Shown here piece by piece: positions 33,397 through 37,240 of a stretch of 64,000 nt of DNA (its first letter is position 1; the number at the start of each line of letters is the position of its first letter). Under the pieces are notes generated by a model, which was given only the letters and a program-made list of their open reading frames with translations, was not told the origin of the DNA and did no database searches. Made by a program: the position numbers and the translations under genes. The stretch lies in sequence record LC592711.1. One strand, 5' to 3'.

Positions 33397-33672
33397 TTAC
33401 TCCTCGTTCAGATGCTTAATTACCTTGTCAAAGACGTCCTGCCAGGTAGCGAACGGGCCATCGAGAAATCCGATCTCCAGTTCATCTTCCAGTTCAGACA
33501 TGATGTCCATGTGATCCAGCGAATCCAGATCCCCGCTCTGGAAAGGCAACGCCAGGAACTCACGGAACTCCGTACTGTTCTCGACCGCGGTCTTACGAAC
33601 CGTTTTCGTGTCGTACGACGATACTACTTGGACGAGCACTCGACGTGCCTTCTGTGCTTTGGCCTCAGCCAT
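33397..33672 (-). CDS. acyl carrier protein-like protein
   Basis: 91 aa. GDLDSLDHMDIMSELEDELEI...FATWQDVFDKV aligns by eye to ACP helices II-IV with the DSL phosphopantetheine serine. Confidence 0.75.
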   Translation of the reverse strand: MAEAKAQKARRVLVQVVSSYDTKTVRKTAVENSTEFREFLALPFQSGDLDSLDHMDIMSELEDELEIGFLDGPFATWQDVFDKVIKHLNEE

Positions 33673-33764
33673 TTTAAAAACCCCTGCTTGTTATTACTGT
33701 TACTGGTTTCGGTCGAAAACCAAATAATCAGTCTCGCTTCATAAAGCCTCAAAAAAATAAGTAG

Positions 33765-34300
33765 ACAGCAAAAAGGGCGGGACAGAGTGGCCGAAGCCAC
33801 CCCATCCCATGCCTAAGATGAAACTGAACTTACATCCCAAGGTCGTCGCATCACCACAAGGAAATGACGAGTGACGACTATGGGCTATAAGCTTTGCAGC
33901 GTTTCCCAACGGATGCGCTACCTATAACTGGTCCCGAAAAGACCCCTTACAATCGATGCGGGCTTAATACACACGAAGGCCAAACGACGTCCCCGCAAGC
34001 GCGAACGCGCGCGCCAGCGATTTACGTCAGGCATCACTAAGTCCTTAAAGGGAAACTCATATCGGCGGCACTAAGAGGCGGCCATGAGTTGTGATCTTCG
34101 CGCAGCTTAGAGCAGTAGTATCGAGACTCTGCCTTCACCACATACGACGTGTGTATTTCGCGGGCCTTTCACCCGAGTCAGGATATATCGCGCAATCGCA
34201 CCATCCTGACCTCTGCCTCGAACAGATCTTCAGAAGCCATGTTGTTAAAGAACGAGACGACTGACCAGTCCCTCACGAGATTAGGTCAGTCGCCAGATCA
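33765..34300 (-). ncRNA. candidate long structured non-coding RNA
   Basis: No ORF of 60 aa or more in ~540 nt; many hairpins; ends in a 13-bp UUCG stem plus U-tract. Confidence 0.45.
33771..33808 (-). terminator. intrinsic terminator closing the structured intergenic region
   Basis: 13-bp stem, UUCG loop, CTTTTT. Confidence 0.7.
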
Positions 34301-34303
34301 CGC

Positions 34304-35554
34304 TTACGGTTGAAGCGAGTCGGTTTGATCAGCAGCTGCTGCGCCGTCCGCATCAGCCTTCACGTCGGTAGCCGCCGGCGTTTGGACTTCTGCTTGAACA
34401 GCAGCATCTGCGACTTCAGCGGTCGGGGCAACGGCGGCGGGAGCAGCGACTTGTTCAGCCGTTGCGTCCACTGCCGGCGTTTCCGCGGTCGGAACTTCTG
34501 CCTGCGCTTGTGCAGCGTCGGTTTCCACCGGCGCAGCCGTTTGCGCTGCGTCAGCAGCTTGTTCCACCGGAGCAGCGTCGACAGGTGCGCCAGTCAGTGC
34601 TGCAGCCGTTTCCGGATCTGCATTCACTTCGGGCGTTTGTGCCAGAGCTTCGGGCGAGTGATCGACTTCTTGCGAGGTCAGATCCGCCGGAGCAGCTGCT
34701 TGTTCCACAGCGGGAGCTTCAGCTTGAGCAGCATCGGCTGCCGGTGCTTCCACTTGTGCTGCGGCATCGACGGCCGGAGCCGTTTCTACCGGTGCTGCTT
34801 GCTCACCAGCGGCGGGGTCGACTTCCGGGGCAGCTTCTTGAGCCACGCCTTCGTCGGCTACGCCAGCCGGTTGAGCTTGTTCAGCAGCAGCGTCTTCCGT
34901 ACCAGCTGCAGCTTGGGCCGGAACTTCGGCTTGTGCATCTGCTGCGGGAGCGTCGACTTGCGGAGCTGCGTCAGCCGGGGCTTGAGCTTGCGCTTCGCCT
35001 GCGGCCGGGTCCACTTCTGCTGCTGCGGGTGCTTCCGGAACTGCCGGGGTTTCCGGTTGTGCCGGTGCATCTGCGGGCTGTTCCACTGCCGGTGCAGCTT
35101 GTTCAGCCGTACCTGCATCCGTGCCCGCTGCCGGATCTTGTTCGACGGCCGGAGCATCGCCCGTCGGTTGTGCTTCTGCGGTGCCAGCGGTGTCGACCGG
35201 TGCTGCATCTGCGGGAGCCGCGTCAGCAGGTGCCGGATCTTGAGCTTGATCACCAGCGGCCGGAGCCGCGTCTTGCGATTGGTCGCCAGCTGCGATCTGG
35301 TTGTCCAGAGCAACTGCTGCTGCGCCAGCGGCTGCGGCGGCTGCCGTACCGTTGTCGCCCAGACCGAGGGCTTCGTTCGTGGTGTCGCCGAGCGGTGCTT
35401 CGTCGCTTGCCGGCGGGACGACCGGATGGTCTTCCTTCTTCTTGTGGAAGATGCCGACGATACGTTCGACCACGTGTTCGGGCAGGGAGGCCAGGGCTTC
35501 GATCGCCAGGATTTCAGTCTTCAGTTCATCGAGAACTTTGTGGATGATGCTCAC
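34304..35554 (-). CDS. highly acidic Ala/Pro/Glu/Gln low-complexity protein
   Basis: 416 aa, GTG start behind AAGGA; imperfect EVDPAAGE/APAVEQ repeats. Confidence 0.8.
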   Translation of the reverse strand: MSIIHKVLDELKTEILAIEALASLPEHVVERIVGIFHKKKEDHPVVPPASDEAPLGDTTNEALGLGDNGTAAAAAAGAAAVALDNQIAAGDQSQDAAPAAGDQAQDPAPADAAPADAAPVDTAGTAEAQPTGDAPAVEQDPAAGTDAGTAEQAAPAVEQPADAPAQPETPAVPEAPAAAEVDPAAGEAQAQAPADAAPQVDAPAADAQAEVPAQAAAGTEDAAAEQAQPAGVADEGVAQEAAPEVDPAAGEQAAPVETAPAVDAAAQVEAPAADAAQAEAPAVEQAAAPADLTSQEVDHSPEALAQTPEVNADPETAAALTGAPVDAAPVEQAADAAQTAAPVETDAAQAQAEVPTAETPAVDATAEQVAAPAAVAPTAEVADAAVQAEVQTPAATDVKADADGAAAADQTDSLQP

Positions 35555-36384: not shown

Positions 36385-36449
36385 GATAATTCCAGTATTG
36401 AGTTTGAAGGAAAAGCATTTCCCTAAAACACTCATTTACTGAACTTCTC

Positions 36450-36715
36450 ACTACTTAACCACCCAAGCTGCGCCTTCGTAAAGGGGTGGCCCGAGATCTT
36501 TATCGTTGGTTAGAACGCTTTGTTGAGCCGCACACCGTAGGAGGTTGGAGTATGCGCTCGAACTCGATCTCAAAGCCGAAAAAAAATAGCAGGAAGGCAT
36601 CTTCCTGCTAAAGGGGGAGTTACCCCGAACGTACCGACTCCCTTCACCACAAAGGAGTTTGCTGCCGCATGAGCGTGCTGCTAATCGAGTCGGTCGTTCT
36701 GGGCAAATCATAGCT
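36450..36715 (-). ncRNA. candidate small structured RNA(s): terminator-ended module plus anti-SD hairpin module
   Basis: ~290 nt intergenic gap with ACCGAC/GTCGGT and CTCCTTT/AAGGGAG stems, a strong terminator at 36579-36610, then a hairpin with loop UCCAACCUCCUACG. Confidence 0.4.
36579..36610 (-). terminator. intrinsic terminator
   Basis: 10-bp perfect stem plus T8. Confidence 0.8.
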
Positions 36716-36730
36716 ACAGCATTTATTTTT

Positions 36731-37240
36731 TTATAGTTCGACGAAGTCCACCTTCGGACCATAACGTAATCCACCCGACCATTCGCTGCTATCACGCAGC
36801 TTACCATGAATGGTTGAACGGATAATGCTTTCGCGTTGGGACTTGCTGTAGTAGAGGCGCGGAATATACATGTCGCATTCTACAGCGATATTGTCGACGG
36901 ACACCAACACTTTGACAGGCAGCATGTGATCATGACGACCCATGTTATCCCGATCGTTCAGCGCTTCAGCAATTTTCAAAAAGGTATTGCGCTGATTCGT
37001 GAGATAGTCATAAGCCGGATCGAACGGACCGCAGTCTTGTGCCAGTTGTTCGCCTTCATTAACGAGTCGGATACACTCGTCGTAGGAAATGGGGCCGATG
37101 GTTTTTAACCACAACGGAAGCATCATCTCGGCTCGACGCTTCAGTCTGTCACTGCCTGGACCACGATCCTCCATCAGGTCCTTCAAATTGGCTTCGCGTT
37201 TTTTCGCGATTTGGTCTTCTAGTTCTTGACGGGAAAGCAT
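36731..37240 (-). CDS. hypothetical protein
   Basis: 169 aa ORF in minus-strand operon. Confidence 0.7.
   Translation of the reverse strand: MLSRQELEDQIAKKREANLKDLMEDRGPGSDRLKRRAEMMLPLWLKTIGPISYDECIRLVNEGEQLAQDCGPFDPAYDYLTNQRNTFLKIAEALNDRDNMGRHDHMLPVKVLVSVDNIAVECDMYIPRLYYSKSQRESIIRSTIHGKLRDSSEWSGGLRYGPKVDFVEL

Follow-up and report, generated by a model that had tools for sequence, protein, structure and literature searches.

Introduction

Of all small ribozymes, the hammerhead has been studied most thoroughly, and it normally forms a strict three-way junction. Surveys of hammerhead diversity have described pseudoknotted type II forms, small insertions into the core and non-circular permutations (PMC3088659, PMC10085705), as well as prophage and phage hammerheads that flank genes and a discontinuous mouse hammerhead with a very large loop (PMC3088659). 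The theta ribozymes, which are minimal and resemble that of hepatitis delta virus (HDV), adjoin transfer RNA (tRNA) genes in gut phages (PMC10879173). Here we describe a folded RNA of about 540 bases, encoded on the minus strand of Burkholderia phage FLC6 (genus Chiangmaivirus; a jumbo phage of 227 kb), whose conserved centre has the core motifs of a hammerhead. The DNA analysed, hereafter the window, is 64,000 nucleotides long and constitutes the final 64 kb of the FLC6 genome (LC592711.1), to which the region studied is 100% identical; unless a contig is named, coordinates are those of the window.

The FLC6 RNA shares with the type I hammerhead (RF00163) an open stem I and closed stems II and III, a CUGANGA box after the 5' strand of stem I, a GAAA box at the entrance to stem III, an A15.1-U16.1 pair as the first of that stem, and a single nucleotide, H17, before the 3' strand of stem I. 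The lengths of stem II (4 bp) and stem I (5-6 bp) are like those of natural hammerheads. Unlike the type I hammerhead, the family to which this RNA belongs has a T-arm, an optional hairpin (H3) and a further hairpin (H4) in place of the single stem II, an invariant extra C before GAAA, and a 10.1-11.1 pair that is not always G-C; in FLC6, moreover, stem III carries a 172-nt four-way-junction insert, a structured 3' domain of 200 nt follows, and the RNA lies below every Rfam threshold. The surveys cited above report no T-loop/D-loop double hairpin (PMC3088659, PMC10085705) and, in the case of PMC3088659, no five-way junction. In open-access full texts we found no relevant hammerhead in jumbo phages or with a T-loop, and no description of the FLC6 RNA or of its form; the genome papers of FLC6 and of the Pseudomonas jumbo phage PaBG do not mention an RNA of the FLC6 type.

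Results

A conserved, folded RNA lies between gp212 and gp211

The genes gp212 (34304-35554, minus) and gp211 (33397-33672, minus) are separated by a 631-nt gap with no annotated coding sequence, the largest annotated gap within the first 50 kb of the window. A preliminary description, made without database searches, had picked out this stretch as the largest non-coding gap and a candidate novel long phage RNA, and it is indeed occupied by a real, conserved, folded non-coding RNA (33768-34303, minus; n1-536, where n = 34304 - window coordinate), which starts just past the gp212 stop codon and ends with the U-tract of a terminator. The region is kept in 11 phage records representing nine distinct isolates (FLC6, FLC8, FLC4-11C, FLC4-4C, FLC4-5C, RSL2, RsoM3USA, RSF1 and SURPRISE13), with identities of 78-100%. 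More distant relatives were reached through the neighbouring acyl-carrier-protein-like (ACP-like) protein: the RNA profile matches upstream of the ACP-like gene in eight of nine metagenomic jumbo-phage loci, down to 57% protein identity. The metagenomic loci carrying the RNA are L012-L014 and L016-L023; in L015, which has a relative of the ACP-like gene, the RNA is missing at the corresponding position.

The minus strand folds with a minimum free energy of -220.1 kcal/mol, compared with -186.8 +/- 7.4 for shuffled sequences (z = -4.5; none of 100 shuffles equalled it). The plus strand is almost as stable (z = -4.1), so that folding energy, although better than shuffled as anticipated, by itself neither picks the strand nor proves an RNA. 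Both the reality of the RNA and its strand are instead established by covariation across relatives. RNAalifold, applied to eight relatives, returned 156 pairs, 26 of them with compensatory changes, and counts over 10 distinct core sequences (below) show the same covariation among homologues of related phages. Its assignment to the minus strand is also clear from G-U pairs that form on one strand only, from the terminator and from the orientation of the core motifs. The expectation that it would match no known Rfam family was borne out for the FLC6 RNA (Rfam 15, gathering threshold and E ≤ 10). The proposal of a novel long phage RNA thus holds insofar as the RNA is real, unannotated, conserved and structured; it is not an entirely novel one, since its invariant centre is the junction of a known ribozyme class.

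The centre of the RNA has the core motifs of a hammerhead

The architecture of the 5' two-thirds of the RNA is set by two long-range helices, n66-70/339-343 and n148-156/329-337. Both had escaped the preliminary description, which reported no hallmarks of tmRNA, RNase P, tRNA or group I/II introns and overlooked the hammerhead CUGANGA, GAAA, A15.1-U16.1, H17 and stems I and III that are present here. The first helix is stem I, formed by GGCUU (34234-34238, minus; n66-70) and AAGCC (33961-33965, minus; n339-343); four of its five pairs covary, all cells being standard, and GGCUU/AAGCC is replaced elsewhere by GGCGU/ACGCC, GGCUG/CAGCC, GUCCG/CGGAC, GAUCUA/UAGAUC or AUCUG/CAGAU. Directly after the 5' strand comes the box CUGAAGA (C3-A9; 34227-34233, minus; n71-77), which is invariant except at N7: this base is A, U or C across all clades, and the rest of CUGANGA is unchanged in 23 of 23 distinct modules. 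The second helix, stem III, is entered through the CGAAA box, whose invariant C and G12 A13 A14 (34157-34160, minus; n144-147) are found in all sequences. Its strands are AUACACACG (34148-34156, minus; n148-156), in which A148 is A15.1, and CGUGUGUAU (33967-33975, minus; n329-337), in which U337 is U16.1.

All nine stem III pairs form in each of the 15 Chiangmaivirus-type sequences, with several compensatory variants and an invariant A15.1-U16.1 first pair, and the helix is wholly rewritten in distant relatives, for example as ACGUCCGUG/CACGGACGU and ACUCCUGUG/CACAGGAGU. Stems I and III each occur in at least six sequence variants. The sole unpaired nucleotide between them is H17 (U338; 33966, minus), the predicted cleavage-site nucleotide, which is U or C in the 15 Chiangmaivirus-type sequences and U, C or A, but never G, family-wide, in keeping with the NUH rule. 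The joining strands (CUGANGA, CGAAA and the single unpaired base) comprise the most conserved bases of the whole RNA.

Pair counts over the 22 bp of stems I, II, H4 and III gave 220 standard pairs out of 220 in the 10 distinct cores represented among the 15 Chiangmaivirus-type sequences. Sixteen of the 22 pairs vary, mostly by compensatory changes on both sides, and when partners were slid by 1-3 positions only 17-56% of pairs were standard. These counts were made in Python on ungapped core segments and are free of fitting bias. An alignment of 22 sequences made with a model, which was fitted to that model so that its pair count leans towards it, showed stem II and H4 to be 99% paired as against 81% in shuffles (none of 500 reaching the observed value) and 25-52% with partners slid; five of nine pairs change on both sides. 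A search of the window with a relaxed hammerhead descriptor, covering both strands, gave a single match (34233, minus), as against 0.04 per shuffled 64-kb strand. The hammerhead-compatible fold (-215.4 kcal/mol) costs 4.7 kcal/mol relative to the unconstrained one (-220.1).

The identity of these motifs is observed directly, and we take the conserved centre (34238-33961) to be a type I hammerhead in an unusual form, with catalysis predicted from the conserved sequence. The FLC6 RNA departs from a three-way junction in which a single stem II is directly flanked by A9 and G12, and its 10.1-11.1 pair is U-A, the other clades having G-C, C-G or A-U at this position.

UCUG occurs twice (n70-73 and n78-81) within 34209-34237 (n67-95), and CAGA at n89-92 can pair with either copy. 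The resulting alternative helix of 7 bp would mask C3-G5 of the core and can form solely in FLC6-type sequences, not in distant relatives. Three helices that RNAalifold drew from close relatives alone (n67-73/89-95, n98-113/344-393 and an extended n143-156/329-342) were rejected where they overlap stems I, II and H4, those parts being contradicted by the distant relatives.

The hairpins between A9 and G12 may form a tRNA-like elbow

Stem II is a hairpin resembling the T-arm of tRNA, UCUG-UUCGAGG-CAGA (34212-34226, minus; n78-92), with 4 bp and a 7-nt loop. The preliminary description had remarked on its T-loop-like character, and the hairpin has since become a key feature of the RNA: its stem exists in six variants, every one of them Watson-Crick paired, no change is seen in the closing G-C pair or at U1, C3, A5 and G6 of the loop, and the loop covaries with that of H4. 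Between the two lies the variable hairpin H3 (34177-34210, minus; n94-127), which is optional, takes the form of a different local hairpin in each relative, and in the compact family members described below is a mini hairpin or is missing. H4, CGGG-UGAAAGG-CCCG (34161-34175, minus; n129-143), also has 4 bp and is preceded by an invariant U128 and followed by the invariant C. Summarised as an GGUGAAAGGCC hairpin, it contains the invariant GGUGNAARGCC, and two of its stem pairs covary.

In tRNA, G18 of the D-loop contacts psi55, the second position of the T-loop, and G19 pairs with C56. Position 2 of the phage T-loop and position 6 of the H4 loop are U and G in 17 of the 23 distinct modules and G and A in the remaining six, without exception, and the G/A state is found in at least four separate lineages (RSF1/L013/L014, L030, L034 and L057). 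The equivalents of G18 and 55 thus covary, and those of G19 and C56 are invariant, from which we infer that the two hairpins, equal in length, lie side by side with their loops docked, and that the T-loop and the D-loop-like UGAAAGG loop touch as in the tRNA elbow. The T-loop motif itself is present in sequence (U1, A5 and a G-C closure), and the contact with its partner is backed by covariation in 23 of 23 modules.

The likeness to the tRNA elbow therefore covers a 7-nt T-loop, U-K-C-R-A-G-K, closed by G-C, and a partner hairpin of 4 bp whose loop ends in R-G, with covarying G18/psi55 equivalents and invariant G19/C56 equivalents, the contact in the phage RNA being proposed from covariation. 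Unlike tRNA, the phage RNA has no acceptor or anticodon function, is matched neither by ARAGORN nor by the Rfam tRNA model, and presents its hairpins in reversed order, T first and then D-like, inside a ribozyme junction. Reading the 5' T-arm as part of a permuted transfer-messenger RNA (tmRNA) was rejected, there being no CCA or acceptor strand after the T-arm.

A wider family shares the putative ribozyme module

A family of related modules was found by pattern scans anchored on the invariant bases; stricter DNA patterns, used first, gave no metagenome match. R1, a covariance model of the 5' module, finds one copy in the window and none in L015. Other contigs of jumbo-phage size also carry the module: L025/L028 and L030 (~244 kb) and L027 (172 kb), the last being equivalent to L047. 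Compact members of 75-110 nt comprise L034 and seven IMG/VR contigs, L051-L057, of which L053 is Pseudomonas jumbo phage PaBG. In these, stem III is a short hairpin, the site is GUC or GUA, and H3 is either missing or very small. Every member outside Chiangmaivirus, save L056, whose stem III is of about 2 bp, has both stem I and stem III, an A-U pair at the start of stem III and an H17 other than G, and several of these members have a textbook GUC site and a G10.1-C11.1 pair. As the compact members are reduced to the module, the constant unit of the family consists of the hammerhead core, the T-arm and H4.

When L034 is compared with the Rfam model Hammerhead_1, the whole model (positions 1-45) aligns, with ends that coincide exactly with the predicted boundaries and a score of 12.4 bits against a threshold of 34; the score is low because the model must treat the hairpins as a 55-nt loop. 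None of the family members reaches E ≤ 0.5 for any Rfam family. The L034 copy (1245-1355), which has a GUC site and G10.1, is the only member that Hammerhead_1 aligns end to end; it stands on a 28-kb contig binned as Thaumarchaeota, a doubtful binning. The PaBG copy (L053 3424-3500, corresponding to KF147891.1 ~121565-121641) is about 77 nt long and lies in an unannotated 1.5-kb stretch inside a tRNA gene cluster. The copy on L047 (5515-5618, minus; NZ_CAAJGK010000011.1, a 286-kb contig of Paraburkholderia sp. BCC1886) is identical to L027 across the 700 nt compared, and this contig looks like a jumbo-phage genome within a bacterial assembly. A BLAST comparison of the L030-type RNA with isolated phages gave no match. 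Among pattern matches in bacterial and archaeal genomes, 18 of 20 lacked the T-arm and stems I and III, and for this reason were treated as chance matches and as a negative control.

Many members lie close to phage tRNA genes, at distances of 0.02-1.5 kb (L021, L025, L028, L030, L051, L053/PaBG, L054, L055 and L057); FLC6 has no tRNA genes (PMC8066314). On L028 (3735-3922), a tRNA-Asn gene stops roughly 9 nt ahead of stem I, and the near-identical RNA of L025 has an open reading frame (ORF) there. Only 1-3 nt separate stem I from the stop codon of the upstream ORF in L020/L021 and L030. What follows the module differs among clades: L020/L021 have a terminator-like hairpin nearly adjoining it, L025/L030 a structured stretch of another kind, over 350 nt long, and FLC6 a conserved structured domain of 150 nt and then a strong terminator.

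Clade-specific domains and other features of the FLC6 RNA

The tip of stem III in FLC6 bears an insert of 172 nt (33976-34147, minus; n157-328), folded as a four-way junction with arms H6, H7 and H8 (UUCG), H7 being itself a three-way sub-junction with two GCCGCC boxes. Chiangmaivirus-type phages conserve GUCGUA, UGCCU and GGCCUUC within it. The stem III inserts of other clades are unrelated, and compact members have a short loop at this place. The 3' domain (33814-33960, minus; n344-490) is made up of hairpins H9, H10 and H11, the last a long one, and RNAalifold reports compensatory changes at some of their pairs; the domain is missing from L020/L021 and different in L025/L030. The insert and the 3' domain are clade-specific additions. 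Pairing of the H6 loop CUCGA with the T-loop UCGAG or with a 3' AUCGA was considered and rejected, as no covariation was seen and UCGA is palindromic.

At the 5' end, hairpin H1 (34256-34294, minus; n10-48) is variable in sequence, has 11 bp in RNAalifold, five of them compensatory, and is absent from L020/L021. The single-stranded motif CGUUCUUUAACAA (34242-34254, minus; n50-62) is invariant in the nine isolates and also occurs in L018; its interpretation as a promoter was rejected, as it does not recur within the window. All the stems that had been listed from the sequence are present in the minus-strand fold, namely GCGACUGACC/GGUCAGUCGU (n11-20/38-47), UCAGGAU/AUCCUGA (n95-101/120-126), CGGGU/GCCCG (n129-133/139-143), the GCAG-AGU stem (n172-178/185-192), ACUCAU/AUGAGU (n214-219/245-250), GACGU/ACGUC, which encloses the UUCG hairpin (n276-280/314-318), GUAGCG/CGCUGC (n383-388/403-408) and GUCGUC/GACGAC (n426-431/457-462), all on the minus strand. 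The intrinsic terminator (33769-33813, minus), GGC...UUCG...GCC followed by CUUUUU, contains the 13-bp UUCG stem (n496-508/513-525) recognised earlier; a terminator scan agrees (33809-33778), and RNAalifold gives it 16 bp, two of them compensatory, with no non-standard cells.

The protein encoded by gp212 is of low complexity and rich in Ala, Pro, Glu and Asp, ranges from 251 to 450 aa among relatives, is missing from the L020/L021 clade, and gave no match in Pfam or PHROG searches; gp211 is labelled ACP-like in a relative. Between the terminator and the ACP-like gene, the sequence ATG AAG CGA GAC TGA (33728-33742, minus) is the in-frame remnant of an ORF of about 63 aa, which is intact in FLC4-4C/-5C, RSL2, RsoM3USA, RSF1, SURPRISE13 and metagenomic relatives, and from which FLC6, FLC8 and FLC4-11C have lost the same piece by a clean deletion. 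The second-largest annotated gap (36385-36730) is overlapped by an ORF of 118 aa (36451-36807, minus) that is not annotated in LC592711 and that likewise had no match in PHROG or Pfam.

Discussion

We consider it roughly two-thirds probable (0.66) that the FLC6 RNA is a self-cleaving hammerhead variant, a judgment drawn from comparison of sequences. Several points weigh against it. Two to three hairpins and an invariant C stand between A9 and G12, where known hammerheads have a single stem II; the 10.1-11.1 pair of FLC6 is not the usual G-C, which several other clades do have; the Rfam hammerhead models give no hit to FLC6, not even at E ≤ 10, and the compact relative L034 falls well short of the Hammerhead_1 threshold (12.4 bits vs 34). 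In addition, a simple self-cleaver would have no need of the strong conservation seen in the stem III insert and in the 3' domain, and the helix n67-73/89-95 allowed by FLC6-type sequences could sequester part of the core.

Some of these points are what one would look for in a non-catalytic structured RNA, in which the hammerhead-like junction, maybe a relic, serves as a scaffold for a particle that binds a protein or tRNA factor through the elbow and the stem III domain. Extra hairpins stand between stem II and G12, the insert is large, conserved and furnished with invariant unpaired bases, the covariation of the elbow suggests a tRNA-like surface, and members often adjoin tRNA genes. We nevertheless think such a role unlikely: the catalytic-core positions are all invariant across very divergent clades while the flanking helices vary freely, H17 is never G, and the compact members consist of the hammerhead module only, which a scaffold role alone would not demand. 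A little more doubtful still is a regulated (allosteric) ribozyme or leader, whose ornate domains would sense a ligand, protein or tRNA and control either cleavage or terminator read-through, and hence the operon of small ORFs and the ACP-like gene (gp211-gp209). The layout is a classic one, with a structured RNA followed by an intrinsic terminator and same-strand genes; synteny with the ACP-like gene holds in all Chiangmaivirus-type loci; and FLC6-type sequences have the alternative core-sequestering helix. That helix, however, is not kept in distant relatives, no conserved antiterminator alternative was found, and the inserts are unrelated between clades and absent from compact members; moreover, with stem III a solid 9-bp helix, gating of the core by the distal insert is improbable.

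Membership of another known class of large RNA (group I or II intron, RNase P RNA, tmRNA, or GOLLD, ROOL, OLE or HEARO) appears very improbable. The RNA is large and phage-encoded, and its T-loop and GGUGAAAGG motifs recall RNase P or tRNA-like RNAs, but it has no flanking exons and ends in a terminator. Searches of Rfam 15 with the whole window (gathering threshold and E-value mode) and with the isolated region (E ≤ 10) gave chance-level results only; the covariance models for group I/II introns, RNase P RNA and GOLLD/ROOL/OLE/HEARO detected nothing, whether at the gathering threshold or at E ≤ 10, and neither the ARAGORN scan of the window for tRNA and tmRNA nor the corresponding Rfam models gave a match. 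Least probable of all, and in our view next to negligible, is a small protein encoded by the Arg-rich ORF of 38/39 aa at 34037-33918, which the preliminary description had offered as an alternative. The ORF and an upstream AAGGA do exist in FLC6, but in RSF1, RsoM3USA and SURPRISE13 its frame is interrupted or other sequence takes its place, and substitutions in the region track helix pairing and not codons.

If the RNA is a self-cleaving hammerhead variant, its context suggests how it might act. The position of stem I in L020/L021 and L030, 1-3 nt past a stop codon, leaves no room for a separate promoter, and the element is most likely transcribed together with upstream sequence. We therefore picture, as a proposal, a cis-acting minus-strand RNA that would be co-transcribed with the upstream gene or genes, end at the terminator (33813-33769) and cleave itself between U338 and A339 (33966|33965). 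The upstream mRNA would then keep the ribozyme as a structured 3' end carrying a 2',3'-cyclic phosphate, and the downstream product would be a structured RNA of about 200 nt with a 5'-OH start and the terminator as its end. Cleavage of a type I hammerhead leaves almost all of the ribozyme on the 5' product, and the 3' product here would start with just the 5-nt strand of stem I. Such cleavage may serve to define RNA ends or to insulate neighbouring transcripts, and cis processing seems the simplest reading of the context. A more elaborate scheme, which we regard as unlikely, is that the elbow is read by a factor that binds tRNA elbows (RNase P, a T-box-like RNA, the ribosomal stalk or a phage protein), or that the insert binds a ligand, so that the RNA would be a naturally regulated hammerhead whose cutting is switched according to the state of translation or of tRNA; or else the RNA, once cut, might itself act as a tRNA-mimicking effector.

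Described systems offer partial parallels for such a role. Like the phage hammerheads of PMC3088659, the FLC6 RNA lies between cistrons, and those RNAs were proposed to cut long transcripts into units; unlike it, they are mostly type II with a pseudoknot. The discontinuous mouse hammerhead (PMC3088659) similarly shows a core that tolerates a very large insertion in one stem. The theta ribozymes are likewise small self-cleaving variants of tailed phages that often adjoin tRNA genes and have a proposed role in cis processing of neighbouring RNAs, cleavage being a prediction in our family; the latter differs in being hammerhead and not HDV-like, and FLC6 differs further in having no tRNA genes and a far larger copy.

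The FLC6 RNA is most aptly regarded as a hitherto undescribed and unusually elaborate version of a known class of ribozyme, fused to clade-specific domains. If this is true, the replacement of stem II by a pair of T-loop/D-loop-like hairpins would extend the hammerhead architecture, as would a stem III able to carry hundreds of structured nucleotides, and the family would explain why covariance-model and descriptor searches miss such hammerheads. As far as the open-access literature goes, it would also be the first candidate functional RNA besides tRNAs found for jumbo phages of the Chiangmaivirus and PaBG types, and it provides a precise predicted RNA-processing site in a phage studied for the biocontrol of rice and tomato pathogens. 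Finally, the frequent neighbourhood of tRNA genes parallels that of the theta ribozymes and suggests that ribozyme-based RNA processing in tRNA regions is perhaps a wider strategy among phages.

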